Assembly (NCBI RefSeq): GCF_000150275.1
Contig: NW_002060946.1
Span: forward strand, 5,618,597-5,682,596
Direction: 5' to 3'
From: Trichoplax adhaerens
Lineage: Eukaryota; Animalia; Placozoa
DNA length: 64,000 nucleotides
In this document: positions 16,501-45,200 of the stretch, piece by piece
Layout: the number at the start of each line of letters is the position of its first letter
Numbering within the stretch: the stretch's first letter is position 1
Position numbers and translations under genes: made by a program
Notes under the pieces: model-generated
Seen by the model: only the letters and a program-made list of their open reading frames with translations
Databases searched by the model: none
What the model was told of the DNA's origin: nothing

Positions 16501-18385
16501 TATTTTTACCATTGTGTCTTGCTGATCATTCTTAAAAATTAACTTTTGGCATATATAGGCCGTCAAACTATTAAACTGGAGTTGTCGTTCATTAGCAGTT
16601 AGAAATATTATCGAGGAAGAGGGTATCCAGCGGTCGGTTGTATTTGTAACAACAAAAGGTCAGCCAAGTATACCTATTAATCACCTTACATTTGGTAATA
16701 GTTTTATGACTAATTTTTATATCTTGACTTCAACCATTAAAGTGGAAGCCAACGATTTAGCTCAAAAGATCAATGGTTTTGGCTTACCTGTTAAACCATT
16801 ACATTCTGATTTAAGTCAGAATAAAAGAGAGGAAATTATAGAAGCATTTAGAGTTGGAAAATTAAAGGCAATCGTTGTAAGTTTATTGTTGACATTTTAA
16901 CCTTGTGATTACCGTATATGTAGTACAATACGCTTAGTGATAATATTGGGAGTTCCGGAAACACTTGAAATGTGTCTTATCTAATACTCCACTCGTTTTG
17001 CTATATATAATTAGGCAACCGATGTAGCTGCTAGAGGATTAGATATTCCTGAAACTGATTTAGTAATTCAAGGTAAGAAATTACTAAATATTTCAGCGTA
17101 TAATAATGATCAGTATGTCATTTGCGTAGCTTTACCACCCTTTACCATTAACATATCAACGTTCTTTTTTTTATAGTTGCTCCACCACCTAACGGATTTG
17201 ACTTTTACGTGCATCGTACTGGTCGCACAGGCCGTGCCGGTCGTTCTGGAGTTGCTGTACTAATTTATGGATCCGATCGCAAAGATCGATTATTTTTAAA
17301 GGAGGTAGTATAAACGGAATCTGCAGATGTTTATCTGAAATTTAAATTTTATGTCTAGATATTGATGTCGTTTACAAAAGTAAACTTTGATTTAAAGTCA
17401 TATACTTATCAATGATGATAGCTCAGACAGCAAGTACAAGTAGAGGAAAAATCACCGTTAAAGTTTGAAGAAATTGCAAAATATGCAATTAGTGCCGCGG
17501 GTGATAGACTTCAAGAGGTAAAGTAGTGGCATTGTTATCATGATAGCATACTGTACTCTTTTGAGATAGATTTTACCAGTAGCCGCACGCTAGATGCTAG
17601 CCATGAATACAGCTTAACCATTGTGAATTTTATTTGGATGTAATAGGCTGATCAGAGATCGATAAAATTTGCTTTACCAAAAGCGCAAGAAGTAAGTTGA
17701 AGATACTAAACAACCAAAATTTGCTATATACACTTCATTCTCTCGTATACAGTGTGCAAAGAGTAGCACATAAATCTGATCTCAATATTTGGATATATTT
17801 GACGTTTTAGCTCTTACAAAAAGAAGAAACTACTGACGGAAATGGTCCTGCTGATGTTTTAGCAAAAGCGTTGTTGGTTTTAGCAGATTTACCGAGCTTA
17901 AAACCAAAGTAAGTTTTGATAATCGTACACAGCGTAGCAGCGACTCTATACCTATAAAGTTGGTAAGTGTACTAAAATAGATATTATCTTTTAGATGGAG
18001 TTCAGACGATGCAGATGACGACTGGGATAGAAAGCGTTCTAAAAGGAAATTTTCGAATAAGGACGATAATTACTCTAGTAGGAGATATGAAAATTTTGGT
18101 AAGAGTGATCGCGATTCTAGTAGGAGACGTGAAAATTTTGGTAGGAGTGAGCGCGATTCTAGTAGGAGACGTGAAAATTTTGGTAGAGGCGATCGTGATT
18201 TTAGTAGGAATCGTGAAAATTTTGGTAAAGGTGATCGAAATTCTAGACGTCGAGAGTTTGGTAAAGATTTTGAATACACACGTTACCGAAAAGATGGGAA
18301 TAGGGATTCTAAAATGGGTGAAGGAAGAGGAAGATCGAAAGGAGACTGGGGTAAAAAATTTAGCCGAGAATTTTTTGATGAGTAA
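13519..18385 (+). CDS. DEAD-box RNA helicase, DDX21/DDX50/plant PMH-like, with putative mitochondrial presequence and repetitive Arg-rich C-tail
   Basis: Spliced motifs: Q (GFNRPFQIQA), I (ALTGSGKT), Ia (APTRELC), GG, Ib (ATPGRL), II (LDEADEML), III (FGATMP), V (ATDVAARGLDIP), VI (HRTGRTGRAG). Stop TAA at 18383-18385. The 5' exons starting at 13519, 13821 and 14643 splice in phase; the start codon is less certain than the helicase core. Confidence 0.9.
18074..18270 (+). repeat. Coding 42-nt tandem repeat (SSRRRENFGRSERD-like) in the helicase tail
   Basis: tctagtaggagacgtgaaaattttggtag... repeated about 4.5 times in frame with the helicase last exon. Confidence 0.85.
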
Positions 18386-18858: not shown

Positions 18859-19686
18859 TCAGTCTTCATCTTTTAAATCCGAGTTTGCGATATCAATATA
18901 CAACTGTAGTTGGCCGTTGATTTTCTTTGCTATAGATAAATACCTGTTAATAAAACAAGTCTGTCGTTATGAATACCAAAGAATCACTCTTGATTATATT
19001 TTGCTACATACAAAACGGTGTTTACTCGTAAATCAATCTTGGTCAATCAAATTATCTTTGTGCAATCGAGCACTTGCAAGTGTATTGTAGCTTCTCAATC
19101 TAGTTTAAATTTAGTAGGCAATCTGTCAATACTGCATTACTTACTTTCCTTTATCAATTACAGTGGCATCTTCACGATGAAGGATATAGCGACCACTAAT
19201 ATAATACATTGAATCTTTGATGATGACTCCATAACCATCGTAAAAATATCGACTTTGCAAGCCATATTCTTTACCCATAATGACCACTTCATCAAAATAT
19301 TCCGTAATGGCTAAAGATAGAACAAAAAAAACTGAAAATTTTCATAATAAAGACAATACGATATAAAATAATCAAGGAGTAGTAATTGATAGCCACACAG
19401 ATTCAATTAGTACAACTGATAATATCTGTTAACTTCTTATCTCTTCGACATTTTGAAATAATAGCAAAGTCATCTTGATGCTTTTATTTTGCACATTGAA
19501 AATCTTACCTTGCCTACCTACAATTTCGCAATGACCCGGAGGTAATAATACGGCGTCATCAGTAAATAAATGATGGATAGCGCCTAAGTCTTGTTGATTA
19601 AAAGCATCTTGTAACATTTTATTAAAAGCACTAATTTCCTTCTTCAGTAAAGGATCGACAACAAAATCAGATGTTTCACTTGACAT
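18859..19686 (-). CDS. NTF2/SnoaL-like (DUF4440/YybH-type) protein, paralog 1 (3 exons)
   Basis: MSSETSD...FNQQDLGAIHHLFTDDAVLLPPGHCEIVGRQ / AITEYF...DATVIDKGK / YLSIAKKINGQLQLYIDIANSD. Matches the family pattern F-N..D......Y/F-TDDA-x-L-PPG....G...I..Y and GKY....K...G.W....D..NS. Confidence 0.85.
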
Positions 19687-22600
19687 GATTAACTACAACG
19701 TTGCAGGTGTTCAAAATGCTCGCTATATAAAGAAAGGCCAAAATTTTGACAGTATTAGCAAATTATTCCATTGCTGCAATTAGACTATTTGTACTGTAAG
19801 ATTATGCAATAAAAGTATAATATAACTCAACTATTCATAAACGCATAGCAAGATGGCATTCATATCACCAATTCATGGTAGCATTGCAGCAGTAGCAATT
19901 AAGCGATTTCGCTTCTTTGCAAAACCTTGCAGTTTTTAAGTTGAAACAGAGTACAGACATGGACAAAATATGTAATTTGCAAGCGAAGATAGTATTCTAA
20001 ACTATGTATTTTAATTTTAATGCATTATTTTAGCTCACCTTAGCCTATAAAAGAGTTATTAACCTGATTATTTTATAAGTCTTTCCTTTCTAGTAGATAT
20101 TTACGAGGTGATGTCCTATTTTGCTGATGCAATAGGGGTTTTTATTAATTAAATGACGATATTTTCAGAGTTTTAGACGGCATGGGACTCAAAGGAGGAA
20201 CAAATAGTTCAATGATCTAACCATATGTTATGATGTACGGTTATTACTTCATTAAATATTAGTAATATTCCTTATTAGCATAAAATGATGATATAAATTA
20301 TATTATTTAACTGGAAGAAATTTTGCCTCCGTTACTGCAGACGCTGCGGATAGAATTAGATTTTCTATTTTACAGTATATGATTGGAATGTATAATTTCT
20401 TATTTTTAGGCATTAAACTTAGATATCAGTGTAACTGTAGTCTAACTAGCAAATAAACTTTGATCTAATACACGTTTATACGTATGATTAAGTAATACTA
20501 ATTCTATTATTAGCAGTATCGCTATGTCTGCATTCGCAGTTAGTTACACACGCCATTTCTAAAGTGACGAAAGTATTTGATTTTTATCGTAATGTTAAAT
20601 TAATTATCATCAATAAATGAAAATAGATCTAAATTGTATCGTCTAATCTAAAATTTAAAATAGATTTTATGAAGGAAGAAAACAGATCTATCGCATACAA
20701 ATTACTCTCTATTGCACTATCATACAGCGATTGATTAAAATTTCATCGATTTATTTGCCATATAATACTTGAAATGGAACTTACATCAATCTTAACGCAA
20801 TCACAGCCGGTATTAACGTGCCAGAATAATTTAATATCGTGCAGAAATCAAGCAGGTATGGTAAAATTTCAGATTTTCCTTCTTCCGCATTGAATATAAG
20901 AAAAGTATTTAGATTAGGGTAGTATCCCAATTCTTTACGGGCTACCTATGCAGGTCGTTTAACTGAAAGGTAATTTATTACTAGTAGCACTGCTTCCTAA
21001 GCATTTCAGCGAACACGGTATGCTGAGATTTATTTCTCTAGAAGGTGGCCAATATTGCAAACCATCCCTGTTGTAAACGCCCTTACCAACAATAGAGCTA
21101 TAGTAATTAATTAAATTAAACGAATCAAATTAAAAAATCTCTCCACTTTAGGATACACCTGAACACTATTTTTGCTCTATCAAATAAATCCATACAGATT
21201 GCTGGCTAAATTTAGCTTATACTATCCATTAATTATCAGAAAAATTCATTTATCAGCAATCATCATAGCTTGATAACGGCGTGTAAGAGAGCTCAGGAAT
21301 AGTCCTTTTCCTATTATACAATCAATATTAAACCTTTTATGACTAAGAAATGCAAATAGAATATCAATTGTTTCATGATAACTAATTTTAATTCTTAGCT
21401 GTATAGATTGAAATAGGCAATTTGGTTGAATTATCACAATTAATTTAACCATTAAGATAAATATCAAGGAAATATCTTTTTATGGCAATATCCTAGCTTT
21501 TATGCGTTAGTAATCAATATCATTCGTCGGATATAGCATTGCAGTAAAATATGGAGCTAGGATTATACTGAGATAGTTTTGCTATTCTTTCTTTATTTAC
21601 TATAGCTATGCAACGTGTTTACGATTTTTGTTTGTCATCCAACAGGTATGATCGGAGCACCCATTTGTAAATTGGGACTGACTGTTGCAATATTGCCGTA
21701 CAGTAGAGTAGTAATTCTTCAAAATACAAGGTGATCAACTCTTAAAATTAGCTCAAGATTGCTATAAGTGGATGTTACTTTATCCACTGTATAGTCTATA
21801 TAATTACTAGAAATGGCTATGATTACAACTATTGATAGCTATTGTAAGGTTGTCCTTTTTATGGCATGGTATCAAAAACTTTTTTGGCGTAATATTTACC
21901 TTATTATACAGATGGAAATGTTTTATATTTGATTTAATGATCCAATTAAAAGACGATAAACACGTGTGGAACAGAGTAGGCCAAATCAATACAGAGTAAT
22001 TCGTTAGTGGCTAAATGTAAAGATATTTATGTATGTATTGATATTGTGTTATTGGAACCGTAGGCCTACTACTAGGTAATACTTTGAGCTATGACATTAA
22101 AATATCAATTTATAATTAGAGTTATGTTTGATTAAAAGGCAATTATTTACGCTATAGTTACTTTCTTTACAATCTTTAAGGAACTTTTTAAGCTTAGACG
22201 ATATTATTTCATCTTGAGCTTACACCTATTGTCCCTTATTGAGTTAGTCTGCAGGACAGTACAAAAAAAAATTGAGGAGTGGGTTTTTATTTCCATCATT
22301 AGCATTTAGATTATGTCGCCCTCTTTTACTTGTATTAGACTTTATTCACATTGTTGATAGTCTAACCCTTGAAAAGTAGAAATAAAATTCTACTACGATG
22401 ATAGCAAGGTGAAATGGCGTCTTTGATATCTAACAGTACTTATAAATAACTTGTTCTTGATCTAGAGAAGTAGATATGAATGGCATTCGATCCTTTCAAT
22501 AGATTAAGGTTAACTAAACAGTTTAAGTCTTCGTGGCATCTCATGAAAGTAATTTATTGGTCTGCTTATTCTTTTCAATATAGAAAGACTTCGATACTAG

Positions 22601-23260
22601 TATAACGTAGCCAAAATTAGCTTTCTGTTGCTATACTAGTATATTGCTAAATTACTATTACAATAAGGAATCTCATCTATCGATACAACAGACTAAATAA
22701 ATAACCAGTAATCCTCTTACACCATAGATATGCATAGAATCATGTACAAAACGGCAATCACAATCCCTATTGCCAATCTATATATTTTATCCTTTTTTTC
22801 ATGGATCATCCTACATTCTACTTTTATCAAGTGTATCAAACCCATGGCAATCATGTCCAGACTGAATTAAGATAGCGACATACTTCAAGTTGGAGAGAGA
22901 CTAATGTAATCAATCATGGCTAAATCAGTCGACAAGTTGGATTCTATCTATCCGCGATAGAGCAATAATTGATATTTTCTAGTCTCCAAATTATTCATAT
23001 ACCATTGAAAACTTAATTATTGTGAATAGCTTTTTAAGCTTGTAACCTGTCATGATTGGTTCCCTAAATATATTAATAATTTAGATTGAATAAAAGAATA
23101 ACAATGATCATTTTAATTATATTGCTATTTTTTAAAAGTGATGGGGATTTAAAACTGTCCTTTCCAACAATGAGAAAGTTCTTTGTTTATTTAATTTAAT
23201 TAGAGTTATGTAAATAATACCGTACGATCTCGTGAAGAAAGAACCGATATTAAATATTAA

Positions 23261-23826
23261 GAAAGGTTTACCCGAAAATGTCCACTTATTAACATTGCAA
23301 AGATTTGATAATAATATATTATTGCGGTTGGAACATCAATTTGCTGTTAAAGAAGACAGCAAATTGTCTAAGCCAGTTACTGTGTCATTAAAGGTCAGGC
23401 ACATAAAAAATATTAATTGTAGTAAACATCTTTTATAATAAAATCAAGCCCAATACAAGAAGTGTGTGACATTCATAAGCTTAACTTAATTTTCTATCTT
23501 TCTTCAACAGAATTTGTTCAAATCTTTCAATATAACTAGTATTTCTGAAGTGACTCTGTCAGCTAATGCTGAAATAGGCCAATTAAAACCGCTTCAATGG
23601 AAAACACATGACACAAGTTCAGGTTTGATTTACCATTAAACAATAAATCTTGCTAAAGTATAATTTATTGGTCTTCATGTTTGGTAGTTTATGAATTCTG
23701 AAATTCGATAAAATTTTATCTTACATAGATAAGCTAAATTTGGAAAAAGTGATAGCTGAAAATCTAAACATCGATCTAAAAGCTATGCAGATTCGAACTT
23801 TCAATGTCACATTTACCCGCTATAAC
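23261..23826 (+). pseudogene. Duplicated 3' fragment (last three exons, first truncated) of the alpha-mannosidase gene
   Basis: [44 protein letters not shown] ... [14 protein letters not shown] is near-identical to 39292-39856; the rest of the gene is absent. Confidence 0.85.
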
Positions 23827-24764
23827 TAACAGAATACAACTAAATCTGTTTTTTAACCTTATAAAAATTATTCAAGTATACCCTAGTTGGATATTAACTA
23901 AAGAAATTATCGTTGAATTTCTTATGTTTGCATATTTTGTCGCTTGACTTAAAATATTAATTGTACTAGTTTATCAATTCTTTAGTGAATTATACTAAGT
24001 CACAAAATTAAGATTTATGTTTTTTCATAAAATGTTCTTTGTACTACTACTACTATCCTTTTAAACTAACATCAATTATTGATAAAACCTAAGTTTATTA
24101 CTAGTATTCATGAAATACTCATGACATGAAAACTGATATGATTCATTTTAGTCACCAATATTAAATCTATTTTTATCAGGTAAAACAGGTCTAGTTAAAT
24201 TTTGTGGAGTATTTCCTAATAATATAATCAAAAGAGCACAGGCAATATTTGTTACTACAATAGGATACATTTCAATTGCTTTATTTCAAGAGTTGCTAAA
24301 AGTTTCCAAAAGCTAATCTTTTAGTTACGTCTACAGCAATTACTAGCTACACCAAAAATGTAGCAGGTAACATAGCATCGACGATAAGACATTACAACTA
24401 ACACCAATAAGTACGAATCACTACACAATAAGTATAAATAATCAATGATACTACAGCTACGTTTAGGAAGCTGAAGCAGCATTGGAATTAGCTGAATCAG
24501 CGTAGATCTTCCATACACCGTTGTCTTTGTAGTATAAAGCAAGACCCCTAAGAAGACGTATTAATAAGAACAGATTAGGTTTCTTATCTACCCATTGCAT
24601 TCAAAATGCTATCAAGTAGCATAAATACGATATACTGTCTGACTGTTGATGTTGGACGATAAAAATTTTCAATATTGGCATCTCTACTTGTATATTGTTC
24701 TAGAATACTTACTTTCCGTTATCAAAGACAGATCCATCAGCCTTGTATAAGGTGTTGTTATAGA

Positions 24765-26628
24765 TTACGAAGCCTCTGTTGGCTTCGGCTCCGACTCCAA
24801 GACATCTTTCATCGATATTTCAGCACTGACAGCATTTACCTGTTGCTTTACCAAATTTGGATCCTAATAAATAATGAAATAATTATCATCATATACCGTA
24901 CAGTAACTGATTTAATAAGATCAATGGATGTCTCAAATATCTCCAATCATTGAATAACTACAGATAATGTTTAGTTAGTATTAACACATTCGTCGATAAA
25001 TCTAATTCATTATGGAGCTCACCAACCTCGCAAGGTTTCTTAGTATCGATTTTGTTTTCAGCCACGGTATTACTACCCTTATTTACGATCTGGCAACCGT
25101 TTTCAGGGGCTTTGATTTGTTCATTTATCGCTAAATTGGAAAGAAGAATAATGTATTAATTTCTATAAAATATCATTCCACCATTACAATGACTAACTAG
25201 ACACGTCCACAATCGATGTGATCACGACTAGATTCAATTAAAATAATAGCAATCTTAATAAATGACATCAGGCCAGACATTTTCTACGTATCCAGTAGGT
25301 AAAGATTGACAATAATATAGAATAGTTTCAATAGATTACAATTAACTGCACTATAGAGCAACTCCATCTCCATTAACTATGGTACCTCATCCTGCTCTAT
25401 AGTGCTTAAAATAATTAAACTATCAATAGTTTGTCTCAGCTAACTATTTAAACAATTCACTTTGATTCATCGAGAACTTTGACCTCTAACAATAAACGAT
25501 TCATGTAGGTTCATGATAGTAACCTCTAGGGACTGATGAAATATTTATATTGCAACCTTTTAATATTTAATAATATCGTCTGATTAATATGAACGTCATG
25601 CAAGTAATTTATCTACGCTCTCGATAGTCAATTAGCTTAGATTTAATTAACGTAGCGTGATTTTAAAATTATGACGTCTTAATAAATGACATTTTATCTA
25701 TTAACATTAGGTGGTAAAATAAGACCATAGAATAACCCTTCTATCCACGTGGATTACGATCGAAGTATGCATAAGAAAAATTTTTTTACTATGAATGGCC
25801 TAGATGCTCAATTTTCTATTACTTTATGAGGTATAAAAATTGAAATAATTATTATACCACGGCTTATCTTTTAGTGTTAACCTTAACCTTGATCGAACTC
25901 TACCGCGTAAAAACTTCTTTCTTACAAAAATTCTAAGCTTAGACTATTAAAGATGTAGCGATTTCATACGTCTTTAATACCGGCATCTTTAATTTCACTT
26001 TTTATCATTAATGCTGACACTCTATTCTATTGACATTCATACAGTATGTCAGATACTATTGTATGATAGTTACGTAGAATAAGCTAAAATATAGAGTGCA
26101 ATCAATATTCTAATAATTCCATCAGTTAGCAGCATATAGAATATGTTACATATCCTTTCCACTAAGACAATCCAAGACTATTACAAATAGGATATTGTAC
26201 ATGTTTAGGATTGAGATGAAATTTACTTGACTCTAGCTTCTATGTGTCAATATACCCTAATAATGATTACAGGATGTACAACTTAAAATTGATGGATATT
26301 TCTAAATTATCGCTACTAAAATAATAAAAATAGGTTCGATTGATCACCAAAAATACAATCCATTCAGCATTCAACAGGTAGGATAAATTAATCTAAGTCA
26401 GCGTATGAATAACTTATCCCTATTTTAATTATCTTACTTTTCGCTGTGTAATAAAGTCATGGTAAAATAAGATATTGCCATAAGTATATATCATTATTTT
26501 ATTGGAAAAACTGGAAGCTCAACCGATTTTAAGGATATCCCAAAACAAGAACCTGACGATTTAAAATGGCTTATCATGGCTAAACAGTACTCCTAATCTA
26601 TAATAAAAATTCATGACTTACCAGACAT
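24765..26628 (-). CDS. Remodelled duplicate of DUF4440 paralog 3; predicted novel 69-aa protein (alternatively a pseudogene, or TGA readthrough to 24463)
   Basis: Exon 1 ATGTCTG (26622-26628), exon 2 25130-25027 using donor GAG|gttggt, exon 3 from 24863. Translation: MSAINEQIKAPENGCQIVNKGSNTVAENKIDTKKPCEDPNLVKQQVNAVSAEISMKDVLESEPKPTEAS*. Confidence 0.55.
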
Positions 26629-26761
26629 GACTTTCTTGTATTCGAAATCAATTAGCAATAGTGTTCGGAAAAATGGATAAACAACTTAGGGGAAAGTTGT
26701 AGGAAACTATTGAACTGGCAGAGATTGGAGGAGAAGTGATTTTTTCCAGTAGTTGTAGGTC

Positions 26762-26768
26762 TTATATA
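26762..26768 (-). promoter_or_regulatory. TATA box of the duplicated gene
   Basis: TATATAA about 135 bp upstream of the ATG; copy of 36317-36323. Confidence 0.55.
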
Positions 26769-28084
26769 GCCTTAGGCCGGCATCATGTTGACGCCTTATG
26801 CTAATTTTTATTCTATTGCTCCTCCAGAAAGAGCCAATTAAGCATATACCATTTCAGTGGTGTCTGAAGAGGGGGGAGTAAACTAGTTATGGCTAACAAT
26901 TATTGTCCGATTATTGACATATCGATTAAACAAATCCTTAATATTTCATTGCTAGTGTTCTAAACCATTGAGTTGAACTTTTAGTACTGAATCTATTCTA
27001 AATAAGCCAAGCTGTCCAGATGTTGCTTTAGTTTTTACTTAATATTTCTGTTCGCCTTATTTCGATGCGTTGATATTAGCAATAGAGTTATACCATAAGA
27101 CGGTTTGTTGTTTAAGTCATTCCGATGAAAAATGTTATACAGGTTGGCATCGGATAACAATATTCTTAAGATATGAATAGAATTGAATGGTACAGCAATA
27201 CCTTGAGTGCTCATTCTTTAACAGCGAGACTTATAACCAATATTGACATAAATGAGGTTAGTAAATATACGGAAAAGTTAAAATATATCCAATTTAAATA
27301 ATGTTGATATATCGACGAATAATTTTTTAGTTTTAAAGTAAAATTTATTATTAACCCTTACACTTACAATGGAATTCTTTTTAATTTTACTCGAAGTATT
27401 TAGGTATAAGTAAAATTGTATAGTTCATGCTTGCAGTTTCGTTTAATCTTTCAATTTTATCGATTTATTTTTATTCTATTTTAACCGATAAAGTATTGCC
27501 ATGGCACTTTGTTTAATAACGTAATAACACTTCATTTGCTAATTATATTATTATGACATATGCTGATTTTATTTCCGGTAAATTTTTGCAACCAAAATCA
27601 ATCTAATTATCGTATTCAGAGTCTTTGCATGGCAGCATATGTACTATTAATGCCAATAGCTTATAAGTATGAGTGATTTAACAGGAAGGCTAATGGATAA
27701 AGATAGATAGATTGTTGTTTATTTCTCAATCTCAAAATGTCAATCTTTGATTAGCAATGGAAAGTAAGGACGAATTTTATTTGTCTAGTGAATAAGATCG
27801 GGCTAAAATCGAGAGAGCAATTTATTTATGTCCTGGGTAGTTAAGTATCATGAGCAATCTTATCGATTATTTAATCATTTCGATTGCTTTCCACATAGAA
27901 TTGCATTATTGGCCGTCAATGATTCATTGTTAAAATTATAATATAATTCAAAATTTTCAATGGTTTAAAAATTCCATTTATTTACTTGTACTCACGCAAC
28001 TAGTTGTATTTAATTGCAACATCTGTTAAAATTATTTCTCACTTTTTGTCATATCCGAGCAATACAGAAACCACCCGATCAAAA

Positions 28085-29049
28085 ATGGCAGGTAATTGAA
28101 AAAAATTCCCTTGAAAATTAATACAGTTATACTAGTTACAGCAATCATTAGAAAGAAGTTGATGTCAGAATTATGAATAGTAGCATCAACAATCCATTTT
28201 AAAAGCAGTTTTTTTAAAGTCAGCTGATGTTATTAGTAGTTTTTTTTAACCAACTGATGTTATTAGCAGTTTTTTTTAACCAGCTGATGTTATTATCTAC
28301 GATAGCATAAAATTAAATTAAAAATAACTGCAGCTAGTTAATGGGTGTAGCTCAACATAGCTGAAAATGAAGAACGTTAAAGTCGATTTTTGAAGCCATT
28401 TTTTAAATAGGAATTTTTATTAATTACTAGATATCAAGACTGCAATCATTGCTGCTGAGGAATCTTATGAAGCTGCCATCAATGGCACTGACCTAGATGC
28501 CATCGTCAACCACTACACTGATGATGCACGTGTATTACCTCCAGGTGCAGAAACAATCTCTGGAAAAGAGGGTAAATATTATTTTTCGATCACTCTTTTG
28601 CTCCTATCACTGAACTATGCGATTCTATCCTCTGCGACAAATTGTTGGCTTAAAACTAAACGGTATGCCTTTATATTTTTCAGCTATTAAGGAATACTTT
28701 GCTTCTTTAGCTGCATTGGGTATTGCTAAAAGTGAATTTGTAACTGAAGAATGTGGCGGTGAAGGCACTCATGGTTTCTTGCGTTATAGCAGCAAACTGT
28801 ACAAGGAGGATGGATCACTTTTCGAAGAAGGAAAGTACGTATCAAGAGTTGATGGTATCTTTCACAGGATATGATTCTAGTTTTCCTAATTTATAAATCT
28901 TTTCTAATCTAACAACATGGATCATTAATCCACTATTCATATTATTATCATGCTTTTATTTTCATTGCAGGGGTGTTGTCTTGTATAGCAAGGACAGTGA
29001 TGGCACATGGAAGATCTTCCTCGATGTTGCCAACTCTAATAAGCAATAA
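28085..29049 (+). CDS. NTF2/SnoaL-like (DUF4440/YybH-type) protein, paralog 2 (4 exons)
   Basis: ATGGCAG|gt; DIKTAIIAAEESYEAAINGTDLDAIVNHYTDDARVLPPGAETISGKE; AIKEYFASLAALGIAKSEF...DGSLFEEGK; GVVLYSKDSDGTWKIFLDVANSNKQ*. Confidence 0.88.
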
Positions 29050-31445: not shown

Positions 31446-34400
31446 CTTTTCGATCGAGCAATTTCTGCCGTAAGGAAGGTTAGTAATCTCGAAGATATGA
31501 GAGATGAACATAGAGCTTCGGATACTTATTTTATCTGATCTGATCATGGATTAAAATCCATGATCAGAATTATAGGAAAATGACCTTCAACTATTTTTCT
31601 CAAGAAATAAACAATCCCTGCAAAACAATTAGACTCTGATTTAGAAGATCAGGAGACTTGAGTCATGATAAAGTGTATCGCGACTTTAATATAGTCCAAA
31701 AGTAACTAATTCAACTGTAATCGACTACGTTTTCTATTTAGAATATAGTATTTGTTTTAATTAATGGCCATTTAAATAGAACAGTTATAGCAATTGGATG
31801 CCCGTAGGCTATGCTATCATCAAATAATATCATCGTCAAGTATTATTCTCATCTAGATTGCTGCTATTGCTAGTGGGTTGATTATCAAACTAGGAACAAA
31901 GCTTTTGCTCGCTTTGAAGCAACTATTGATCAAGTTATCGTTGTACCTTTTCATTTCGCTATTATCCTACCATCACTATCGCTGAACTTTGAGAATAGAA
32001 TCAATGAAAATGAAATAATGTCATTTGTTATTGAACGATAAGAACTGATGCATAAGCGTAAAAATAAAATTGCATTTTAAGCAGTGCTGTTAGAATCGAA
32101 ATTGTGTTACTATCTTAATTTTATCGCTGAATTGGTTAATTATCGGTAGAAAAAATTTTCATCACGACTAGACGATTGTAGATAAGTTTTAAATTAACGA
32201 ATGGATTATGAAGTCATTGACTTTAGTTTTCGATCCTGTTACGGTAGGATGTCTATCCGTTGAGTATGCTACTCAGCGTCGATATTGGGCATCTACGTTC
32301 AATATTTAGTCACTTGCTTCATGGGTAATATACTTTCTTGGCTATAGTATAGAATGATATTTCTTGTATCTGTTGATAGAAAAATTTCTGACTTAGCTAT
32401 TCAGAAATTCCTATATTTCCTCTGAATAAAAGCATTTTAAATAGTCCTACTTAATATTAATAATGTTATTCATACGATGTTGATTTTCGACGTATGATCA
32501 TTTTACTATAGTACTTTGCTACAAAATATCATGGATTGAGACTAGTTTATTTATTATTGTTATTAAAGGCTTAATATGAGAGATCTAGCTCTATCTCTTG
32601 ATTTTCATCATACTCACATTTATATTTAAAGTCAGCACTCAATTTAAAATGTATCTTTGATCTAACTTGAACTATTAATCGAGGAATATCGTATAAATAA
32701 GAATATGACTACTTCCATTACTATTCTTGTCGTTTATGCAATCTATACAGGCTATATAGAAATAATTAGCAGATGATTGCGGTTAACAACACTTATTGTA
32801 TATTAGTAACATGTAGGGACATTGTATTTCATGATCTTTTATTTATAATCTAAGAATGAGATTAGCATCGGATGGTTATAAATCAAGTTAAATCGATGTT
32901 ATTCCACATATAAATATTAAAGCTTTACCCGATTAGTATAGGTCCTAGATGATCAATCATCAAACGAGTTATTGTATGTAATCATGAGTAGCCGATACTA
33001 CTTGTCTTATGGATTAATAGCTTACTTTTATCTCAACCTACAATTAATGCTTGTATTGTCATCAACATGGTTTAATGCTTTGCACGGCTGATTAACCATT
33101 AAGTGCGAGTATTGATCATGAAATGATACGATTTAATTATGAACCATCGATGCCACTCGTCTTATGATAGGTTATTAAGCTCTAGATTTCTCATAGATAA
33201 TCATAGACTACCTCTAGTTGTCAATGTAAGAAATATTTTATTACTGTCAAAGCTAAATTTTTACTGTTGCACGCCGGGTGCACTTTGATTTTGCCTCATT
33301 TCTATAGCTAATAAATCATAAGAATAAGTCATGAAATAAACGATTTATCCGTGGCCTATCAATGCTACTTGTCTCCTTTGGATCAAATTGTCTATTTTTA
33401 CCTTGACCTATAGATAATACTTACATAATACGTTCCTATGTTGAAAAGGATATTATACAATTAAAATAATAAGTTCAAAGTGATATAATAGCGAAGTAAG
33501 ATATTGGAACAAAATCCTTGACAACTAGAGTAATTTTCTTAATTAAATGGAATGTAAGTAGCTATTAAATGCTCGAAGGCATCAACAGTTTATTTAAAAT
33601 AAAACATCGATGAACATGTATTACAATGAAGTAAATAAGCTGATAATAGCATAGAACTATCGTCCTGATTGGTTTACAAGCTTTAAAGACTTTAAATTCT
33701 ATTTACCTTATTTTACTTTCCCTGTAGATGATAGCGAATCATTTTTCTAATATAGCTATCAGCTACTTTGTACAGTATGTTTTAAAATCTTTTTTTTAAA
33801 TCATAAAAACACGTTTTCTCTTTCGAAATAGCCTCAGAAATAGATCAAGAATGTTCCGCTAATATCTTTTTTACTATAGCAAAGATCGTAGCGAACTTTG
33901 ACTGCATTCTCGCTTGTGATTTTACCTCATCGTCATTGTTTAATAGACTTGATTTCGATAACGGAAAACTTTAAAGTTTTCCTCTCTTAAATTACCCTTG
34001 GGATATCTTAGGAATGTCCTATAAAATTCTTCTAGAATGACAATGATGGTAGACGATAACGGACCTTGATCACATTTCCACCTCCTATTTAATCTTATTT
34101 GCAATCGATTAGATTTGAAAATTTTGTACTTGATTTATATTATCTAGGTAGCTGATTAAGCAGTTATCATTTTAGCTTGGCTATAATATGATACTGGTAC
34201 TGTAGATCAAGCATTGACGAATGTATCTATGATTGAAATCTACTATCGCATTAGGAACTAATAAGCCCGAGTAATATTATGGTGGCTTAGTTACACAGTA
34301 AAATGATGCAGTAGAAGAAGCAAGAATTAATATAAAATAGCCTTAACAGAATTCTCTTGATGTATTGATAACTAATCAATCAGGGTAGTCATCATGATCT

Positions 34401-36316
34401 AGCTAAGTTATAACACAATTTTGTTGATCAAGCATTAATTAATCGAGAGCATCAGAACCTGAAATTTTTTGTCGTATTGTAAATTATTTAATCTATAAAT
34501 TCGAGTAATCGTCATTTTAGCTTAATTGTAATAGGATATTGCAGATAAAGCAGTTATTAATGTAAAACATTCATCACTAAAAATCTGTTGTTGCATCGAT
34601 GATAATTAATAGAGCTCTAGATAAAATTTTATTAATTAAAACTAAAATATCGATAGGAGATAACGTAACTGCTTTAAAATTAAAGCGATTATCGGCAGGT
34701 GAAGATTGATTATGTTCCATGTTATCATAATTAGGCTATTTCTGGCTATCAATTCAGTTTTCGAGCTATAGTTGCTATCGTGCTATTCCTAATTTTATAT
34801 AAATTAGAAGAAATTGATTCAATTCCAATTCGATGATTACGTCTAGACCTAACAGGTTAGTTTATTGCTTTGCAGTTGATATCAAGAGAATGATGGAAGT
34901 AGGCAGATCTCAACTTATAATTGGTAAGGGAGGAAGTGATTATCTGCGTAACTAAGTCAAGCAGACAAATTATTGGTAGCAGATCTTAAGCATTATTGAT
35001 TTAATATTTAATATCGGTTCTTTCTTCACGAGATCGTACGGTATTATATTCGTATTTAAATTTAAAGCTTTTACATAACTCTAATTAAATTAAATAAACA
35101 AAGAACTTTCTCATTGTTGGAAAGGACAGTTTTAAATCCCCATCACTTTTAAAAAATAGCAATATAATTAAAATGATCATTGTTATTCTTTTATTCTATC
35201 TAAATTATTAATATATTTAGGGAACCAATCATGACAGCTTACAAGCTTAAAAAGCTATTCACAATAATTAAGTTTTCAATGGTATATGAATAATTTGGAG
35301 ACTAGAAAATATCAATTATTGCTCTATCGCGGATAGATAGAATCCAACTTGTCGACTGATTTAGTCATGATTGATTACATTAGTCTCTCTTCAATTTGAA
35401 GTATGTCGCTATCTTAATTCAGTCTGGACATGATTGCCATGGGTTTGATACACTTGATAAAAGTAGAATGTAGGATGATCCATGAAAAAAAGGATAAAAT
35501 ATATAGATTGGCAATAGGGATTGTGATTGCCGTTTTGTACATGATTCTATGCATATCTATGGTGTAAGAGGATTACTGGTTATTTATTTAGTCTGTTGTA
35601 TCGATAGATGAGATTCCTTATTGTAATAGTAATTTAGCAATATACTAGTATAGCAACAGAAAGCTAAATTTTGGCTACGTTATACTAGCATCAAAGTCTT
35701 TCTATATTGAAAAGAATAAGCAGACCAATAAATTACTTTCATGAGATGCCATGAAGACTTAAACTGTTTAGTTAACCTTAATCCATTGAAAAGATCGAAT
35801 GCCATTCATATCTACTTCTCTAGATCAAGAACAAGTTATTTATAAGTACTGTTAGATATCAAAGACGCCACTTCACCTTGCTATCATCGTAGTAGAACTT
35901 TATTTCTACTTTTCAAGGGTTAGACTATCAACAATGTGAATAAAGTCTAATACAAGTAAAAGAGGGCGACATAATCTAAATGCTAACGATGGAAATAGAA
36001 GTCCACTCCTCATTTTTTTGTACTGTCCTGCAGACTAACTCAATAAGGGACAATAGGTGTAAGCTCATGATGAAATAATATCGTCTAAGCTTAAAAAGTT
36101 CCTTAAAGATTGCAAAAGAAAGTAACTATAGCGTAAATAATTGCCTTTTAAATCGATATGTCAATAATCGGACAATAATTGTTAGCCATAACTAGTTTAC
36201 TCCGCCCTCTTCAGACACTATTGGAATGGTATATGCGTAATTGGTTCTTCCTGGAACAATACGGAGCAATAGAATAAAAATTAGCGTAAGGCGTCAACAT
36301 GATGCCGGCTCAAGGC

Positions 36317-36323
36317 TATATAA
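36317..36323 (+). promoter_or_regulatory. TATA box of paralog 3
   Basis: ggcTATATAAgacc about 135 bp upstream of ATG 36456. Confidence 0.55.
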
Positions 36324-36455
36324 GACCTACAACTATTGGAAAAATCACTTCTCCTCCAATCTCTCCCAGTTCAATAGTTTCCTACAACTTTCCCCTAAGT
36401 TGTTTATCCATTTTTCCGAACACTATTGCTAATTGATTTCGAATACAAGAAAGTC

Positions 36456-38654
36456 ATGTCTGGTAAGTCATGAATTTTTATTATAGATTAGGAGTGCTGT
36501 TTAGCCATGATAAGCCATTTTAAATCGTCAGGTTCTTGTTTTGGGATATCCTTAAAATCGGCTTAAGCTTCCAGTTTTTCCAATAAAGTAATGATATATA
36601 TATACTTATGACGATATCTTATTTTACCATGACTTTATTACACAGCGAAAAGTAAGATAATTAAAATAGGGATAAATTATTTATTCGCTGACTTAGATTA
36701 ATTTATCCTACCTGTTGAATGCTGAATGGATTGCATTTTTGGTGATCAATCGAACCTATTTTTATTATTTTAGTAGCGATAATTTAGAAATATCCATCAA
36801 TTTTAAGTTGTACATCCTGTAATCATTATTAGTTTTTATTGACACATAGAAGCTAGAGTCAAGTAAATTTCATCTCAGTCCTAAACATGTACAATATCCT
36901 ATTTGTAATAGTCTTGGATTGTCTTAGTGGAAAGGATATGTAACATATTCTATATGCTGCTAACTGATGGAATTATTAGAATATTGATTGCACTCTATAT
37001 TTTAGCTTATTCTACGTAACTATCATACAATAGTATCTGACATATGAATGTCAATAGAATAGAATGTCAGCATTAATGATAAAAAGTGAAATTATAGATG
37101 CCGGTATTAAAGATGTATGAAATTGCTACATCTATAATAGTCTAAGCTTAGAATTTTTGTAAGACAGAAGTTTTTACGCGGTAGAGTTCGATCAAGGTTA
37201 AGGTTAACACTAAAAGATAAGCCGTGGTATAATAATTATTTCAATTTATATACCTCATAAAGTAATAGAAAATTGAGCGTCTAGGCCATTCATAGTAAAA
37301 AAATTTTTCTTATGCATACTTCGATCGTAATCCACGTGGATAGAAGGGTTATTCTATGGTCTTATTTTACCACCTAATGTTAATAGATAAAATGTCATTT
37401 ATTAAGACGTCATAATTTTAAAATCATGCTGCGTTAATTAAATCTAAGCTAATTGACTATCGAGAGCGTAGATAAATTACTTGCATGACGTTCATATTAA
37501 TCAGACGATATTATTAAATGTTAAAAGGTTGCAATATAAATATTTCATCAGTCCCTGGAGGTTACTATCATGAACCTACATGAATCGTTTATTGTTAGAG
37601 GTCAAAGTTCTCGATGAATCAAAGTGAATTGTTTAAATAGTTAGCTGAGACAAACTATTGATAGTATAATTATTTTAAGCACTATAGAGCAGAATGAGAA
37701 ACCATAGTTAATGGAGATGGAGTTGTCCTATAGTGCAGTTAATTGTAATCTATTGAAACTATTCTATATTATTGTCAATCTTTACCTACTGGATACGTAG
37801 AAAATGTCTGGCCTGATGTCATTTATTAAGATTGCTATTATTTTAATTGAATCTAGTCGTGATCACATCGATTGTGGACGTGTCTAGTTAGTCATTGTAA
37901 TGGTGGAATGATATTTTATAGAAATTAATACATTATTCTTCTTTCCAATTTAGCGCTTCAAGAAGAAATCAAAGCCGCTGAAAAGAAATGCAACGAGGCC
38001 ATTAATAAAGGTGACGTTGATGCAGTCGTTGGTTGCTATACTGACGATGCTAAAATCTTAGCACCTGGTAGCCCAATGATCTCTGGCAAGGCTGGTGAGT
38101 TCCATAATGAATTAGATTTATCGACGAATGTGTTAATACTAACTAAACATTATCTGTAGTTATTCAATGATTGGAGATATTTGAGACATCAATTGATCTT
38201 ATTAAATCAGTGACTGTGCGGTATACGATGATAATTATTTCATTATTTATTAGCAATCAAAGAGTATTTCGCTGGCTTAGCTGCTCTCGGTATTGGAAAA
38301 TCGGAAACAGATGTCCTTGAAGTTGGAGGTGGAGGCAACAACGCCTACGTAATCTATAACAACACCTTATACAAGGCTGATGGATCTGTCTTTGATAACG
38401 GAAAGTAAGTATTCTAGAACAATATACAAGTAGAGATGCCAATATTGAAAATTTTTATCGTCCAACATCAACAGTCAGACAGTATATCGTATTTATGCTA
38501 CTTGATAGCATTTTGAATGCAATGGGTAGATATGAAACCTAATCTGTTCTTATTAATATATCTTCCCAGGGGTCTTGCTTTATACTACAAAGACAACGGT
38601 GTATGGAAGATCTACGCTGATTCAGCTAATTCCAATGCTGCTTCAGCTTCCTAA
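36456..38654 (+). CDS. NTF2/SnoaL-like (DUF4440/YybH-type) protein, paralog 3 (4 exons)
   Basis: ATGTCTG|gtaagt; 37954-38094 ALQEEIKAAEKKCNEAINKGDVDAVVGCYTDDAKILAPGSPMISGKA; 38254-38404 AIKEYFAGLAALGIGKSETDVLEVGGGGNNAYVIYNNTLYKADGSVFDNGK; 38570-38654 GLALYYKDNGVWKIYADSANSNAASAS*. Confidence 0.88.
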
Positions 38655-39291
38655 ACGTAGCTGTAGTATCATTGATTATTTATACTTATTGTGTAGTGAT
38701 TCGTACTTATTGGTGTTAGTTGTAATGTCTTATCGTCGATGCTATGTTACCTGCTACATTTTTGGTGTAGCTAGTAATTGCTGTAGACGTAACTAAAAGA
38801 TTAGCTTTTGGAAACTTTTAGCAACTCTTGAAATAAAGCAATTGAAATGTATCCTATTGTAGTAACAAATATTGCCTGTGCTCTTTTGATTATATTATTA
38901 GGAAATACTCCACAAAATTTAACTAGACCTATTTTACCTGATAAAAATAGATTTAATATCGGTGACTAAAGTGAATCATATCAGTTTTCATGTCATGAGT
39001 ATTTCATGAATACTAGTAATAAACTTAGGTTTTATCAATAATTGATATTAGTTTAAAAGGATAGTAGTAGTAGTACAAAGAACATTTTATGAAAAAACAT
39101 AAATCTTAATTTTGTGACTTAGTATAATTCACTAAAGAATTGATAAACTAGTACAATTAATATTTTAAGTCAAGCGACAAAATATGCAAACATAAGAAAT
39201 TGAACGATAATTTCTTTAGTTAATATCCAACTAGGGTATACTTGAATAATTTTTATAAGGTTAAAAAACAGATTTAGCTGTATTCTGTTAG

Positions 39292-42200
39292 TTATAGCGG
39301 GTAAAGGTGACATTGAAAGTTCGAATCTGCATAGCTTTTAGATCGATGTTTAGATTTTCAGCTATCACTTTTTCCAAATTTAGCTTATCTATGTAAGATA
39401 AAATTTTATGGAATTTCAGAATTCATAAACTACCAAACATGAAGACCAATAAATTATACTTTAGCAAGATTTATTGTTTAATGGTAAATCAAACCTGAAC
39501 TTGTGTCATGTGTTTTCCATTGAAGCGGTTTTACTTGGCCTATTTCAGCATTAGCTGACAGAGTCACTTCAGAAATACTAGTTATATTGAAAGATTTGAA
39601 CAAATTCTGTTGAAGAAAGATAGAAAATTAAGTTAAGCTTATGAATGTCACACACTTCTTGTATTGGGCTTGATTTTATTATAAAAGATGTTTACTACAA
39701 TTAATATTTTTTATGTGCCTGACCTTTAATGACACAGTAACTGGCTTAGACAATTTGCTGTCTTCTTTAACAGCAAATTGATGTTCCAACCGCAATAGTA
39801 TATTATTATCAAATCTTTGCAATGTTAATAAGTGGACATTTTCGGGTAAACCTTTCGTAATGGCTGACATCTAAATTGATAGTTATTAAAATTCAGCAAG
39901 CACCACGGAGTCGGATATTTAGATTATTATTACCATGATTGCACCGTCTAAAATGGATAAATTACCTGAGCGTTAGAATTGCTCATCCAGCTTTGTAAAC
40001 TGCTATAGGAATTTGAGAAAGATACATAAGGCCTTAATAGCAGCGCTTCTCCCTGTTCTCGGTGAAGTTTAGCAGAGTCTGATGGTGGGGCCAACGTAAG
40101 ATAGTGAACTCCTCGAATGATTAAACCTTTACCGGTAACACCCTTTTCGTTAAGTGGCTCTCCTACGCCACGTGCATCATCATAAAGTAATCTTCTATGA
40201 ACCTTTATTACAGTGCAAGATTTTTTCAGTATCAAAAACCTATTGGTTGTAAAGTTAGCTGGATCATACTTACCATTAATTCCATTTGTCCATCTTTCAA
40301 ACTTGCGCCACCCTGTGACCTGTCCGTCAAAACAGTCAACTGCATAGAATTATCCTTTATGTACATTCTGCTATTAACTGGATAATAATTTTGAGAGGCT
40401 GGCTCAGTGGATCTTAATTTCCAAGTAGGGCGATAGTTTCGTTTTCTCTTTTGCATTTCTCTTCCATTTGCGTCGGTATAATACAATCCGGCACTCTTGA
40501 TTTGACTTGTGAATCTGCTGATAATCTCCTTACCTAATCGGTCCCTACACGTAGATAGAGTAAGATTGATAAAAGCGTGTTTTAATATGATAATATCATC
40601 AAATTTTGTAAGCGAGAGCAATTGATCTTTTTGATATACCCAATTGGGATAGAGCCAACGGTGTATTCAAATTCGGCAAATTTCCAGTTTTCTTGTAAAC
40701 GGACAACCTGAGTTACCCATGGAGAAAATTTTTGATGCACTTCTTGGATTACTGACCCTTTCTAATAATAGACAAAAACATTGATGAGCTAGTAGACGAT
40801 TGTAAACCCTATAAAACTAGCTTATTACCGTAATCTGGGTTATTTCAACTTTGTCACTGGATGCAATAGGTATTGGGTCCATTACCGCAGGTCGAAATAT
40901 GTAAGCGCCAGATGCTTGACTACTCTCGTCGTTGCCTTTACTTGCGTTATACCACAAAAAGTCTTGATCGACATCCATAGTCTTTGATTGTTTTCCAATT
41001 TTAGTCGTAATAGATTTTAAACGTCCGGTGGCATTCGAGAAGGTGAGTTTTAGGTACTAATATATGAAAACAAAGATATAGTCAATTAATTTTGCTTTAT
41101 TTTCCATGATAGTATCGTTAGAATGATAATAAAAGTATAGAAATGTGTGCAGTTATCATTACAAGCTATGATATTAATTTGAATTTACCTTATTCTCCAT
41201 GACAATATCTTTGTTTGACAGATCAAACTTAATAGTTTTCGCGAGTTCGGCGGAACTGTAAAATGATGGAGACTTGATAGTTTTTACGTAAAATTCGCTA
41301 TAGCCAAGAGCGGGTAAAGTTGCCTCGAAGACCAAGGTATATGGAGCTTGTCCGGGATATTGCATTTGTGATTTGTAATGCATATTCTTATTAACCTTTG
41401 AAGATTAAAAACAAGGATAAGCGATATTCATTGGCAATATAGAAAATGCTCTTGCTGAAACGAGTTAATATAGAAGTCTGCAGTTAACCTGGGCGTGAAT
41501 TGGCTTTCCGTTAGGTCCAATAACAGTTACATGAGATGCCGAAATAGGTAAATAGATAGTACTACTCATAGATCTTGCTATAGGATTGTAAACATTAATC
41601 GTAAATGATTTCGATTTTTGAGTTATAGAGCAGATACTGATATTGCGATAATCACAATAGACATAAGTAGCAGCCTTGTTAGAACTTGATTTCTTGGCTA
41701 AGTTGCCAATGGCATCACTAATAACGTTCTAAAATTTAAAATAGTTTGCAATAATAACATTTAATTTCAAGTTTCCAAGAAGAAAAAAACATTAAGTGAA
41801 AATCCCACTTCGATCGATATGACTGATTTGCTTACTTTACATTCCTTACGACCATCCGCTAATCTCGATGCATAGTCAAAATCAACCAATTGTTTAGCAG
41901 TACCAGTAACAGAATCATGATGCTGTGCTACTCCCATAGCTCTAGTAAGTGCTTCAGATGATGAGTTACCCGTCGACTTTGATATGACTTCTAGTTGCTT
42001 GCAAACCTTTAAATAACGGAAGCAAAACATACTTTGTTAGTATAATATTCTTAATCTAAAATGAATTGAAGACTTTATTCAATGTTATTTTGTTAATCTA
42101 CTTTATTAAGTATGCAAACCTGTAGAATGCTGTTAGAATCTCTAACATAGCCTTTATAACCTGGTCTACTGGTAAAATATCCAGTCCAATAGCAATGATT

Positions 42201-45200
42201 ACAATCAGAATATGGGAAAAAATCGTCGGTTTTAACTTGCCATGTTAGATTGGCAGCATGGACAGCTTTGAGATATACTGAAGGAGTTGAATAGAAGATA
42301 TTGACGTTCTTATGAGTATTTTTGACATGTTTTATTAATTTGTCAAGATTTTTGAACCAATGTCGCGCATTTTCATAGTTAAAATCATTGCCCATCGTTA
42401 TCATGATGTTGTTGGTTCGATAGCCGGAAGCTTGCATCATCACTAATTCCATGAAAGTCTTTACTCTTTCATCAGCATTGTATCCCCTTAGGTTTTTATC
42501 ATCCTGTATTGGTGGATCATTACAACCTTGATCGAAACAGAATCCAGGGGGTGGGCTATACCGATTATACAAGACACCGGTAAATAATTGAGTTTTTTTA
42601 CCCAAGCTTTGACTTGCACGCCAAATCATCTCCATTTCTTTTTTGGATAATCTTGCACTTTTATCATCATGATCGATTCTACCTAAGAAAAATGCATTAA
42701 ATCCCATCTGCCAAAGGATGGATGGGTTGATCAACCGAAAATTAGTAATAGATTAGTGGTTATGTAGAAGATTAATTGAAGTGTGCTTGTACAATATAGA
42801 TAGAGGTCTTTGCTTTTCGATTTCGGTGCTAACAATTATTTATAATATTTATAGTATCGATACATACAGGATGATAGCATGATCGATACCTACCGGTATA
42901 ATATAAAGCGAGTAATTGCTATACCGTAGGAAAGCATGATTAACATTTACAATAGAGTGATAAACTACGTAAACAATAACATTAAGTTGTAATTTATAGA
43001 GGCTTCCAACTTTATGCTAATTATTTATAGTGTTTTCTCTATCGATGTATAGCATCACAACATAATCAATACATATGTCTAGGGGTAACATAAGTAGCGT
43101 CTTTTCAATCATGAGCAGTCATTACAATCTTGAATGGCTCTTCCCCACATAATGTAGATTATATATGTGTTAACATATGCACGTAAAGCAATCATGTAGA
43201 CAGAAATGGACGAATTGCAATATTCTTTATTACATACACGTATATCTACCTGTGCAAATAAAGATGCCTGAGCAGCTGAATGGCCGAAAGGATCGATATG
43301 CCAAGCGATTGTAGGTCGTGCAGCATCACCAAAAGTATCTCGAATAAATTTTAATCCTAGGGTCATTTGATCAATGATTGCATTATAATGCGTGGCAGCT
43401 TCATCATTCATGGACCAGCCTCCATTGATAAATTCTAGACGACCTAATTATGCAATCATTTCCGATATTAGATGATTGCATCTACAGTTATACCGCAAAC
43501 TAACAGTGATAAGTTGGATAGTAAACAATATCTATCTATCCGTTCTAACCAGTACTACTGTATCCAAGTGATGAAATTCAATCTTCTACACTACAGTAAA
43601 CAATATCTGTGCGTTCTAACCAGTACTACAGTATGTAAGTGATGAAAAATTTAGTCTTATAAACTACAGTAAACAATATCTTTCCGTTGTAACCAGAACT
43701 ACCGTATCCAGTACTACTACTGCTACTGCATCCAAGTGATGAAAATTCAATCTTGTACACTACAGTAAACAATATCTGACATTCTAATCAATACTATTAC
43801 TGCTACTGCACCCAAGTGATGAAAATTCAATCTTATATACCACAGTAAACTATATCTGACATTCTAATCAGTACTTTTACTGCTACCGCATGCAAGTGAT
43901 GAAAATTCAATCTTATACACTACAGTAAACAATATCTGTCCATTCTAATCAGTACTACTGCATCCAAGTGATGAAAATTCAATCTTATACACTACAATAA
44001 AACAATATCTGTCTATTCTAATCAGTACTACTGTATCAAAGTGATGAAAATTTAATCTTATACACTACAGTAAGCGGTATCTGTCCGTTGTAACCAGAAC
44101 TACCGTATCCAATTGATGAAAATTCGATCCTATACACTACAGTAAACGATATCTGTCCATTCTAATCAGTACTACTGCTGCTACTGCATCCAAGTGATGG
44201 AAATTCAATCTTATACACAACAGTAAACAATATCTGACATTCTAATCAGTACTACTACTGCTACTGCATCCAAGTGATAAAAATTCAATCTTATACACTA
44301 CAGTAAACGATATCTGTCCGTTGTAACCAGAACTACCGTATCCAGTTGATGAAAATTCGATCCTATACACTACAGTAAACAATATCTGTCCATTCTAATC
44401 AGTACTACTGCATCCAAGTGATGAAAATTCAATCTTATACACTACAATAAAACAATATCTGTCTATTCTAATCAGTACTGCTGTATCTAAGTGATGAAAA
44501 TTCAATCTTATACACTACAGTAAACGATATCTGTCCGTTGTAACCAGAACTACCGTATCCCATTGATGAAAATTCGATCCTATACACTACAGTAAACAAT
44601 ATCTGTTCATTCTAATCAGTACTACTGCATCCAAGTGATGGAAATTCAATCTTATACACAACAGTAAACAATATCTGACATTTTAATCAGTACTACTACT
44701 ACTACTACATCCAAGTGATGAAAATTCAATCTTATATACTACAGTAAAGTCGTCCTCTCTCTGCCTTCAATTTGAACCAGATAAATGCACGCTATACCTT
44801 GTTTGACCAACATCTTGACATTTTCACGCGTTTTCTTATCTTGTTCACGCCACCATCTGGTAAAGAAAGCAATTTCAACATAAATGAATTTCTTGGATGG
44901 ATCAGCCATCAATTCTTGTACGACTGTATCTAGGATATACTGGACACCAGCATGAGCGACTTTATCCTTGGCTGAAATAAGATGATATGGAAGAACAAAT
45001 TATGACAATAACCAGGATGAAAATGAACTACTTAAGTTGATGAATCAAAATGAAGTCAAACAAAACATTGGCTGTTGATTGCAATGGCCATTAGAAAGCC
45101 ATCTACTCTACCTCCGTAGTAGTATTGATCAAGTGTTTTTAACCAACCAACATCGTTGTGAGTATGAGAGACAAGATGGATATTTAGTTTGTTATTAGCA

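Follow-up and report, generated by a model that had tools for sequence, protein, structure and literature searches.

Humans and cattle have both furnished examples of duplication through circular DNA intermediates. Chicote et al. (2020, PMC7450558) ascribed 16 human segmental-duplication pairs to such intermediates, Takahashi & Innan (2020, PMC7188851) added three further human cases of duplication mediated by extrachromosomal circular DNA (eccDNA), and the translocations of KIT behind colour-sidedness in cattle are likewise attributed to circular intermediates (Durkin et al. 2012, Nature 482:81, as cited in PMC12235870). Here we describe a probable further instance of this mechanism, itself not new, from the placozoan Trichoplax adhaerens. 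The locus lies in a 64,000-nucleotide stretch of contig NW_002060946.1 (RefSeq assembly GCF_000150275.1, positions 5,618,597 to 5,682,596; hereafter the window, whose numbering is used throughout), where a 4.86-kb unit at 35001-39861, bearing a small SnoaL-like gene and the end of an alpha-mannosidase gene, has an inverted and circularly permuted copy at 22132-26930.

Evaluating the copy against its parent unit by repeat finding and blastn, we found exactly two blocks of similarity, both at E = 0. The first (X', 22132-23260, minus strand) is the reverse complement of 36151-35001, and the second (Y', 23256-26930) is the reverse complement of 39861-36147, such that the parent consists of block X (35001-36151) followed by block Y (36147-39861). 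A plain inversion of X plus Y would be expected to read Y' then X', whereas the copy reads X' then Y', confirming it as an inverted, circularly permuted duplicate. The length of the copy (4,799 nt) is exactly one unit, and both of its ends map to one donor point, 36147-36151, within 5 nt. Parent and copy lie 8.07 kb apart on the same chromosome and are ~98% identical outside two exon tracts considered below. A search of the whole 105.6-Mb genome found just these two copies of the unit, and showed both flanks of the parent (32000-35000 and 39862-42860) to be single copy. The copy was inserted between two SnoaL-like paralogues, S1 and S3, ~1.1 kb upstream of the start codon of S3. In the 264 kb surveyed, this pair is the sole dispersed duplicate that reaches 200 bp and 85% identity, in a sample too small to give a frequency.

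Set beside the human segmental-duplication pairs (PMC7450558), the Trichoplax pair shares the reversed block order (A-B/C-D becoming B-A/D-C), breakpoints that carry microhomologies and short indels alone, the lack of transposon ends and a donor that has been retained. It differs from them in size (~4.9 kb against tens to hundreds of kb), in being local (8 kb away on the same chromosome), in the extent of its integration microhomology (7 of 8 nt against 1-2 nt) and in its placozoan host, and which of its copies is the donor was read from gene structure, not from outgroups. With the human eccDNA-mediated duplications (PMC7188851) it has in common the dot-plot signature and the lack of any residual tandem copy, but those three strong candidates span 20-130 kb with a mostly undetermined donor, whereas here the donor is known and the junctions are resolved to the nucleotide. 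The likeness to cattle KIT lies in a permuted copy of a gene-bearing segment that was reportedly reinserted elsewhere with consequences for expression; the cattle events are reported to have been interchromosomal, hundreds of kb long, serial (two rounds) and visible in the phenotype, unlike the event described here, which has no known phenotype.

Turning to the junctions, we found the heptamer GATTAAA on the plus strand at both integration points, namely at 22130-22136, where the target flank is joined to X', and at 26924-26930, where Y' is joined to the target flank. The donor point to which both ends map, and at which the presumed circle would have opened (36147-36154), reads GATTTAAA on the reverse strand. 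Inside the copy, the outer ends of the parent are fused at 23260/23261 (...TAAATATTAA joined to GAAAGGTTTA...; closure junction 23256-23261, as given in the reference assembly), and a three-way comparison of the left end of the parent (TTAAT), its right end (GTAAT) and the fusion (TTAAT) revealed TAAT to be common to both closing ends. All three junctions carry microhomology alone, and no shared repeats of at least 10 nt were found at the unit ends. The integration microhomology amounts to 7 of 8 nt, GATT(T)AAA, and that at closure to 4 nt; among random site pairs of the window, junction microhomology of at least 7 nt arises by chance with P ~0.0009 and of at least 4 nt with ~0.024. We therefore regard the microhomology between the ends of the copy and the target as meaningful. 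An earlier note on this DNA, made from its letters, had claimed the rotated block order, the fusion of the donor's outer ends at 23260/23261, GATTAAA at both integration junctions and the opening point on the donor's reverse strand, and each of these is borne out here. Its coordinates and motifs were correct, its placing of the end of Y at 39856 rather than 39861 being a matter of how 4-5 nt of junction microhomology are assigned, and the self dot plot that it called for is clean, with two blocks and, by sensitive self-blast, no tandem remnant.

Because a circular permutation is symmetrical, the sequence relationship by itself gives no direction, and we looked to gene context instead. A lysosomal alpha-mannosidase gene of glycoside hydrolase family 38 (GH38) extends down the minus strand from above 42000, and the right end of the parent unit, 39861, falls within one of its exons (39682-39875, minus strand), 14 nt after the exon start at the splice acceptor. 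Membership of this gene in the GH38 lysosomal alpha-mannosidase family is given by a match to PF07748, the GH38 C-terminal domain, above its cut-off (E = 2.4e-19), and by bovine lysosomal alpha-mannosidase (1O7D chain E), which aligns at E = 1.1e-7 and agrees in residues to either side of the breakpoint; the cut exon itself scores 19.6 bits against PF17677, below the cut-off of 22. A 2,973-nt RNA contig runs from the cut exon into the upstream exon of the parent and, when placed on the copy, has a loose end at 23256. The copied 3' part of the gene (23261-24348, plus strand) comprises an exon truncated at the fusion, whose acceptor is lost, followed by two further exons and the 3' untranslated region (UTR), with splice joints at 23391/23509 and 23620/23727 when the parent's mRNA contig is placed on the copy. 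Since the mannosidase exon and its mRNA cross 39861 in the parent and the exon is truncated in the copy, the unit at 35001-39861 is ancestral and that at 22132-26930 is derived, which rules out the opposite direction of transfer and settles in its favor the donor polarity that the earlier note had assumed.

Blocks X' and Y' are of the same age, as they are equally diverged from the parent outside the rewritten exon tracts (1.61 +/- 0.38% for X, 1.84 +/- 0.23% for Y). No residual tandem or partial copy was found beside either unit, whether by sensitive self-blast of the window or in the genome-wide search of the parent's flanks, and it is the lack of such a remnant that Takahashi & Innan (2020, PMC7188851) use to exclude tandem duplications as false positives of the eccDNA signature. 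Assessing the unit for mobile elements, we found no transposase or integrase among its open reading frames (ORFs), which are exons of host genes only, and no tRNA or Rfam features in 18000-42000. A DNA transposon, Helitron, long terminal repeat (LTR) element or DIRS element is ruled out by there being two copies, no terminal repeats of at least 10 nt, no element-encoded enzyme and ends that are not Helitron-like, in agreement with the earlier note, which had seen no transposon ends.

The best explanation of this arrangement, and in our view a probable one, is a single duplication that passed through circular DNA, whether as a free eccDNA or as a circular template for replication. The 4.86-kb segment 35001-39861 would have closed on itself over the 4-nt microhomology TAAT, giving a circle that bore intergenic DNA (1.15 kb), the whole of a small SnoaL-like gene and the final three exons of the alpha-mannosidase gene convergent with it. 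That circle would then have opened at GATTTAAA, 1.15 kb from the point of closure, and been joined in reverse orientation, 8 kb away, into a matching GATTAAA that lay between a pair of SnoaL-like paralogues, presumably by microhomology-mediated end joining or a short-homology crossover. We favor a circle because it would be expected to yield a copy of one-unit length whose two ends fall, to within 5 nt, at the same place in the donor. Of the corresponding proposal in the earlier note, a ~4.86-kb circle reintegrated in reverse by microhomology, the structural part holds (permutation, one-unit length, fused ends), and the circle itself is still a deduction.

Serial replication template switching without a closed circle, of the type termed fork stalling and template switching or microhomology-mediated break-induced replication (FoSTeS/MMBIR), is the rival that survives best, although we consider it unlikely. 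Replication would pass from the target fork to the donor at 36151 and down to 35001, switch to 39861 and down to 36147, and return to the target, a path that accommodates three junctions with microhomology alone and a retained donor; a replicative interaction is also discussed by Chicote et al. (PMC7450558). This path, however, gives no reason why the second segment should end within 5 nt of the start of the first, and for a 4.86-kb unit such a coincidence has a chance of some 0.1-0.3%. A tandem dimer (XYXY), from which a segment running from mid-unit to mid-unit was copied in reverse to the target before the array collapsed to one unit, is slightly less likely again. Tandem dimers are a known source of false eccDNA signatures (PMC7188851), and collapse by unequal crossing-over would be traceless. 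Against this stand the lack of a residual partial copy beside parent or copy, the single-copy flanks of the parent, and the need for three events in place of one, in which the copied segment must be exactly one unit plus 5 nt, so that one-unit length is again matched only by a coincidence of the same order as for template switching. Two independent inverted duplications of X and Y side by side, or a simple inverted duplication with later internal rearrangement, are very improbable given that X and Y are equally diverged, that their donor boundaries coincide within 5 nt and that the donor ends abut cleanly in the copy.

That the reference assembly wrongly joined two diverged repeats is just as improbable, as judged by comparing 21500-27400 (5,901 letters) with Logan contigs from three DNA runs (X1-X3) that come from three independent studies under two organism labels. 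The junction of the left flank with X' is spanned by a contig (21500-22161) in 3/3 runs, and the right junction is bridged in each as well (26880-27400 in X1, 26898-27400 in X2 and 26911-27400 in X3), which provides the junction support that the earlier note had asked for at the two outer ends. Depth rises from ~25 in the flanks to ~50 inside the unit, and contigs specific to the copy, at single-copy depth, cover the strongly differing places 24740-24935 and 24987-25158. These outer junctions, single-copy specific exons and two-copy depth recur across all three studies and both labels, and a spliced RNA contig is specific to the copy; all of this speaks against an artefact. In favor of an artefact are the inner fusion, which is not visible among the short-read contigs listed, and one X3 contig that leads from the right flank of the parent into Y and whose mean depth could not be apportioned. 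A further contig from an RNA library (26871-27301, 431 nt, depth 8) spans the right junction, with one end in the promoter region of the copy and the other in the flank, and could be an unannotated transcript, an upstream start of the copied gene or divergent transcription.

Several points weigh against the circular reading. The circle is deduced from the structure of the copy, and the inner fusion at 23260/23261, absent among the contigs listed, is taken from the reference assembly. The closure microhomology TAAT is weakly above chance and thus suggestive. Today's donor site, GATTTAAA, has one T more than both junction heptamers, which makes the joining register ambiguous, so the empty target site may have carried GATTAAA or GATAAA, and would then read ...GTTTGATTAAACAAATCC... 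or ...GTTTGATAAACAAATCC... in an outgroup that lacks the copy. In metagenomes, neither the inner fusion nor the one form of the empty site that was scanned for gave a match.

As for what the unit carries, block X is 1.15 kb of untranscribed intergenic DNA, and its copy X' has an RNA depth of 0 and a 23-nt deletion at 23213. Block Y takes in the end of the convergent alpha-mannosidase gene (its final three exons and 3' UTR) and, on the plus strand of the parent (36348-38651), a whole small SnoaL/DUF4440-like gene, of putative NTF2-like type. The exons of this small gene, at ~36348-36462, 37951-38087, 38255-38405 and 38571-38651, were mapped from the copy, with the neighboring paralogue model P0001 as further evidence, and their translations add up to a product of ~127 aa. 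Exon 2 of the parental gene alone scores 21.6 and 21.1 bits against PF12680 and PF14534, short of their respective cut-offs (27 and 25.2); both families are present in the precomputed annotation of P0001 ("hypothetical protein TrispH2_012007 [Trichoplax sp. H2]"). The gene belongs to a local cluster of small SnoaL/DUF4440-like genes of ~125-130 aa with a common four-exon plan, whose members are S1 (~19144-19692, minus strand), S3 (28085-29046, plus strand) and the parental gene, with two further, more distant exon matches on other contigs, C1414 and C1412.

The copied SnoaL/DUF4440-like gene (24319-26736, minus strand) is transcribed and spliced. Its exon 1 lies at 26622 to ~26736, exon 2 at 25027-25109 and exon 3 at 24713-24863, with exon 4 running from 24546 downwards. 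Splice joints 24862>25026 and 25109>26622 are seen in contig 13 of RNA run X19, with a further joint at 24546>24712, and this spliced contig is specific to the copy in that it covers tracts where the parent is ~35% different. Its depth is 14.5 versus 152 for a contig at 24406-24546, where the two units are near-identical and where the reads probably come mostly from the parent. Relative to the parent, the copy uses an acceptor shifted 24 nt downstream and a donor shifted 4 nt upstream, and a 1-nt deletion near 24800 shifts its frame onto a stop. The remaining ORF (24765-26628, minus strand), by exon-by-exon translation, has 62 codons over three exons; it opens with an ATG at 26628-26626, takes in 27 codons from exon 2 and 32 from exon 3, and closes with a TAA at 24767-24765. 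This predicted 62-aa ORF keeps too little for membership in SnoaL/DUF4440, and the copy would no longer be able to make a protein of the SnoaL fold, which leaves two readings of it, as a pseudogene that is still transcribed or as a short ORF that is new.

Because the permutation moved X to the far side, the copied gene has kept just ~195 nt of its upstream DNA (26737-26930, minus strand), with a TATA box at 26761-26768. Over 26737-26923 this promoter differs from the parent at 11/186 positions plus two indels, a divergence of 5.9%, ~3x the background of the rest of the unit. The RNA contig of run X19 that ends at the start of exon 1 (26736) continues for 26 extra letters with no match in the window within 3 mismatches, and these could be a distant 5' exon, a leader or the product of a chimeric contig. 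The "gene birth" through eccDNA that the earlier note had put forward finds only partial support: transcription, splicing and signs of selection (below) are in its favor, and the broken frame, down to a 62-aa predicted ORF, goes against it.

Most of the copied gene has diverged little: its introns, exon 1, exon 4 and flanks differ from the parent by 1-2%. Two tracts on the minus strand, both unique in the genome, depart sharply from this pattern. The first, in exon 3 (24768-24863), is ~35% different from the parent and ends 3 nt before the new stop, such that divergence is limited to the first two-thirds of the exon and the remaining 52 nt are identical to the parent. The second, covering exon 2 (25027-25130), is ~34% different and has in-frame deletions of 27, 3 and 3 nt. 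Similarity to the parent is still significant in the exon 3 tract (z = 7.7), which rules out replacement of exon 3 by unrelated sequence, and stands at a z of about 2 in the exon 2 tract. Gene conversion from another paralogue was also rejected, as no other locus matches the rewritten tracts in protein or DNA; the exons of the parent resemble paralogue S3, and those of the copy do not.

Evaluating these changes by codon position in the copy's frame, we counted 13, 10 and 2 at positions 1, 2 and 3, respectively, from 24842 to the stop (25 sites each), a scarcity at third positions with a binomial estimate of about 0.004. Runs X1-X3 all carry one allele that differs from the reference at five places in the ORF (24839, 24863, 25029, 25050 and 25107), and 5/5 of these variants are at first codon positions and change the amino acid. 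A sixth variant, at 25119, lies just upstream of exon 2, and the allele has the parental base at 3/6 sites (25029, 25107 and 25119). Elsewhere, the flank contigs listed differ from the reference by just 1-4 other letters each over about 500-660 nt. The pattern looks like change that is still under way, is biased to replacements and keeps to the part of the copy that is predicted to be translated. Because the changes are replacement-biased and limited to the ORF, they argue for selection on a translated product and against plain decay or an old paralogue; an ancient paralogue with homogenized introns is disfavored in particular by the avoidance of third positions and by strain variants showing the divergence to be continuing. 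The size of this ORF-limited divergence is far beyond ordinary positive selection, and we found no explanation for it.

Recent duplicates with accelerated exons and conserved introns are a feature of the phospholipase A2 (PLA2) genes of snake venoms and of conotoxin genes. The Trichoplax copy resembles these in that its coding tracts differ far more than its introns and flanks, mainly at replacement positions. It differs from them in that the contrast is much larger (~35% versus ~1.8%) and in that the product would be a truncated 62-aa ORF rather than a known secreted toxin. That the circle-borne copy has become a new translated short gene, its coding tract alone remodelled at ~20x the rate of its own introns, we put forward tentatively, as a doubtful but not negligible reading.

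Repeats of other kinds occur elsewhere in the window. Downstream of the alpha-mannosidase gene are two long tandem arrays (43520-44748 and 45774-46546), with periods of ~72-80 nt and 69 nt, respectively, and 78-92% identity between units, and the 3' end of a helicase gene has a 42-nt tandem repeat (18032-18241) whose product is a tail rich in arginine, serine and glycine, built of SSRRRENFGR units.

This locus offers a compact example of a probable circular-intermediate duplication, in that donor, target, closure point and opening point are all directly readable, as are the effects of the event on genes: a first gene came across intact with a minimal promoter, a second came as a dead 3' fragment, and upstream DNA ended up on the far side. 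The copied gene is a tractable case of a young duplicate turning into something new or decaying, with transcription, shifted splice sites, a broken frame and ORF-limited divergence all in view. Were the copy indeed translated and remodelled, it would mean that young duplicates in Trichoplax are under exceptionally strong diversifying selection or that a mutational process there targets ORFs. More broadly, finding such a case in one of the earliest-branching animal lineages suggests that eccDNA is an old and general means of making dispersed duplicates, and no peculiarity of mammals.

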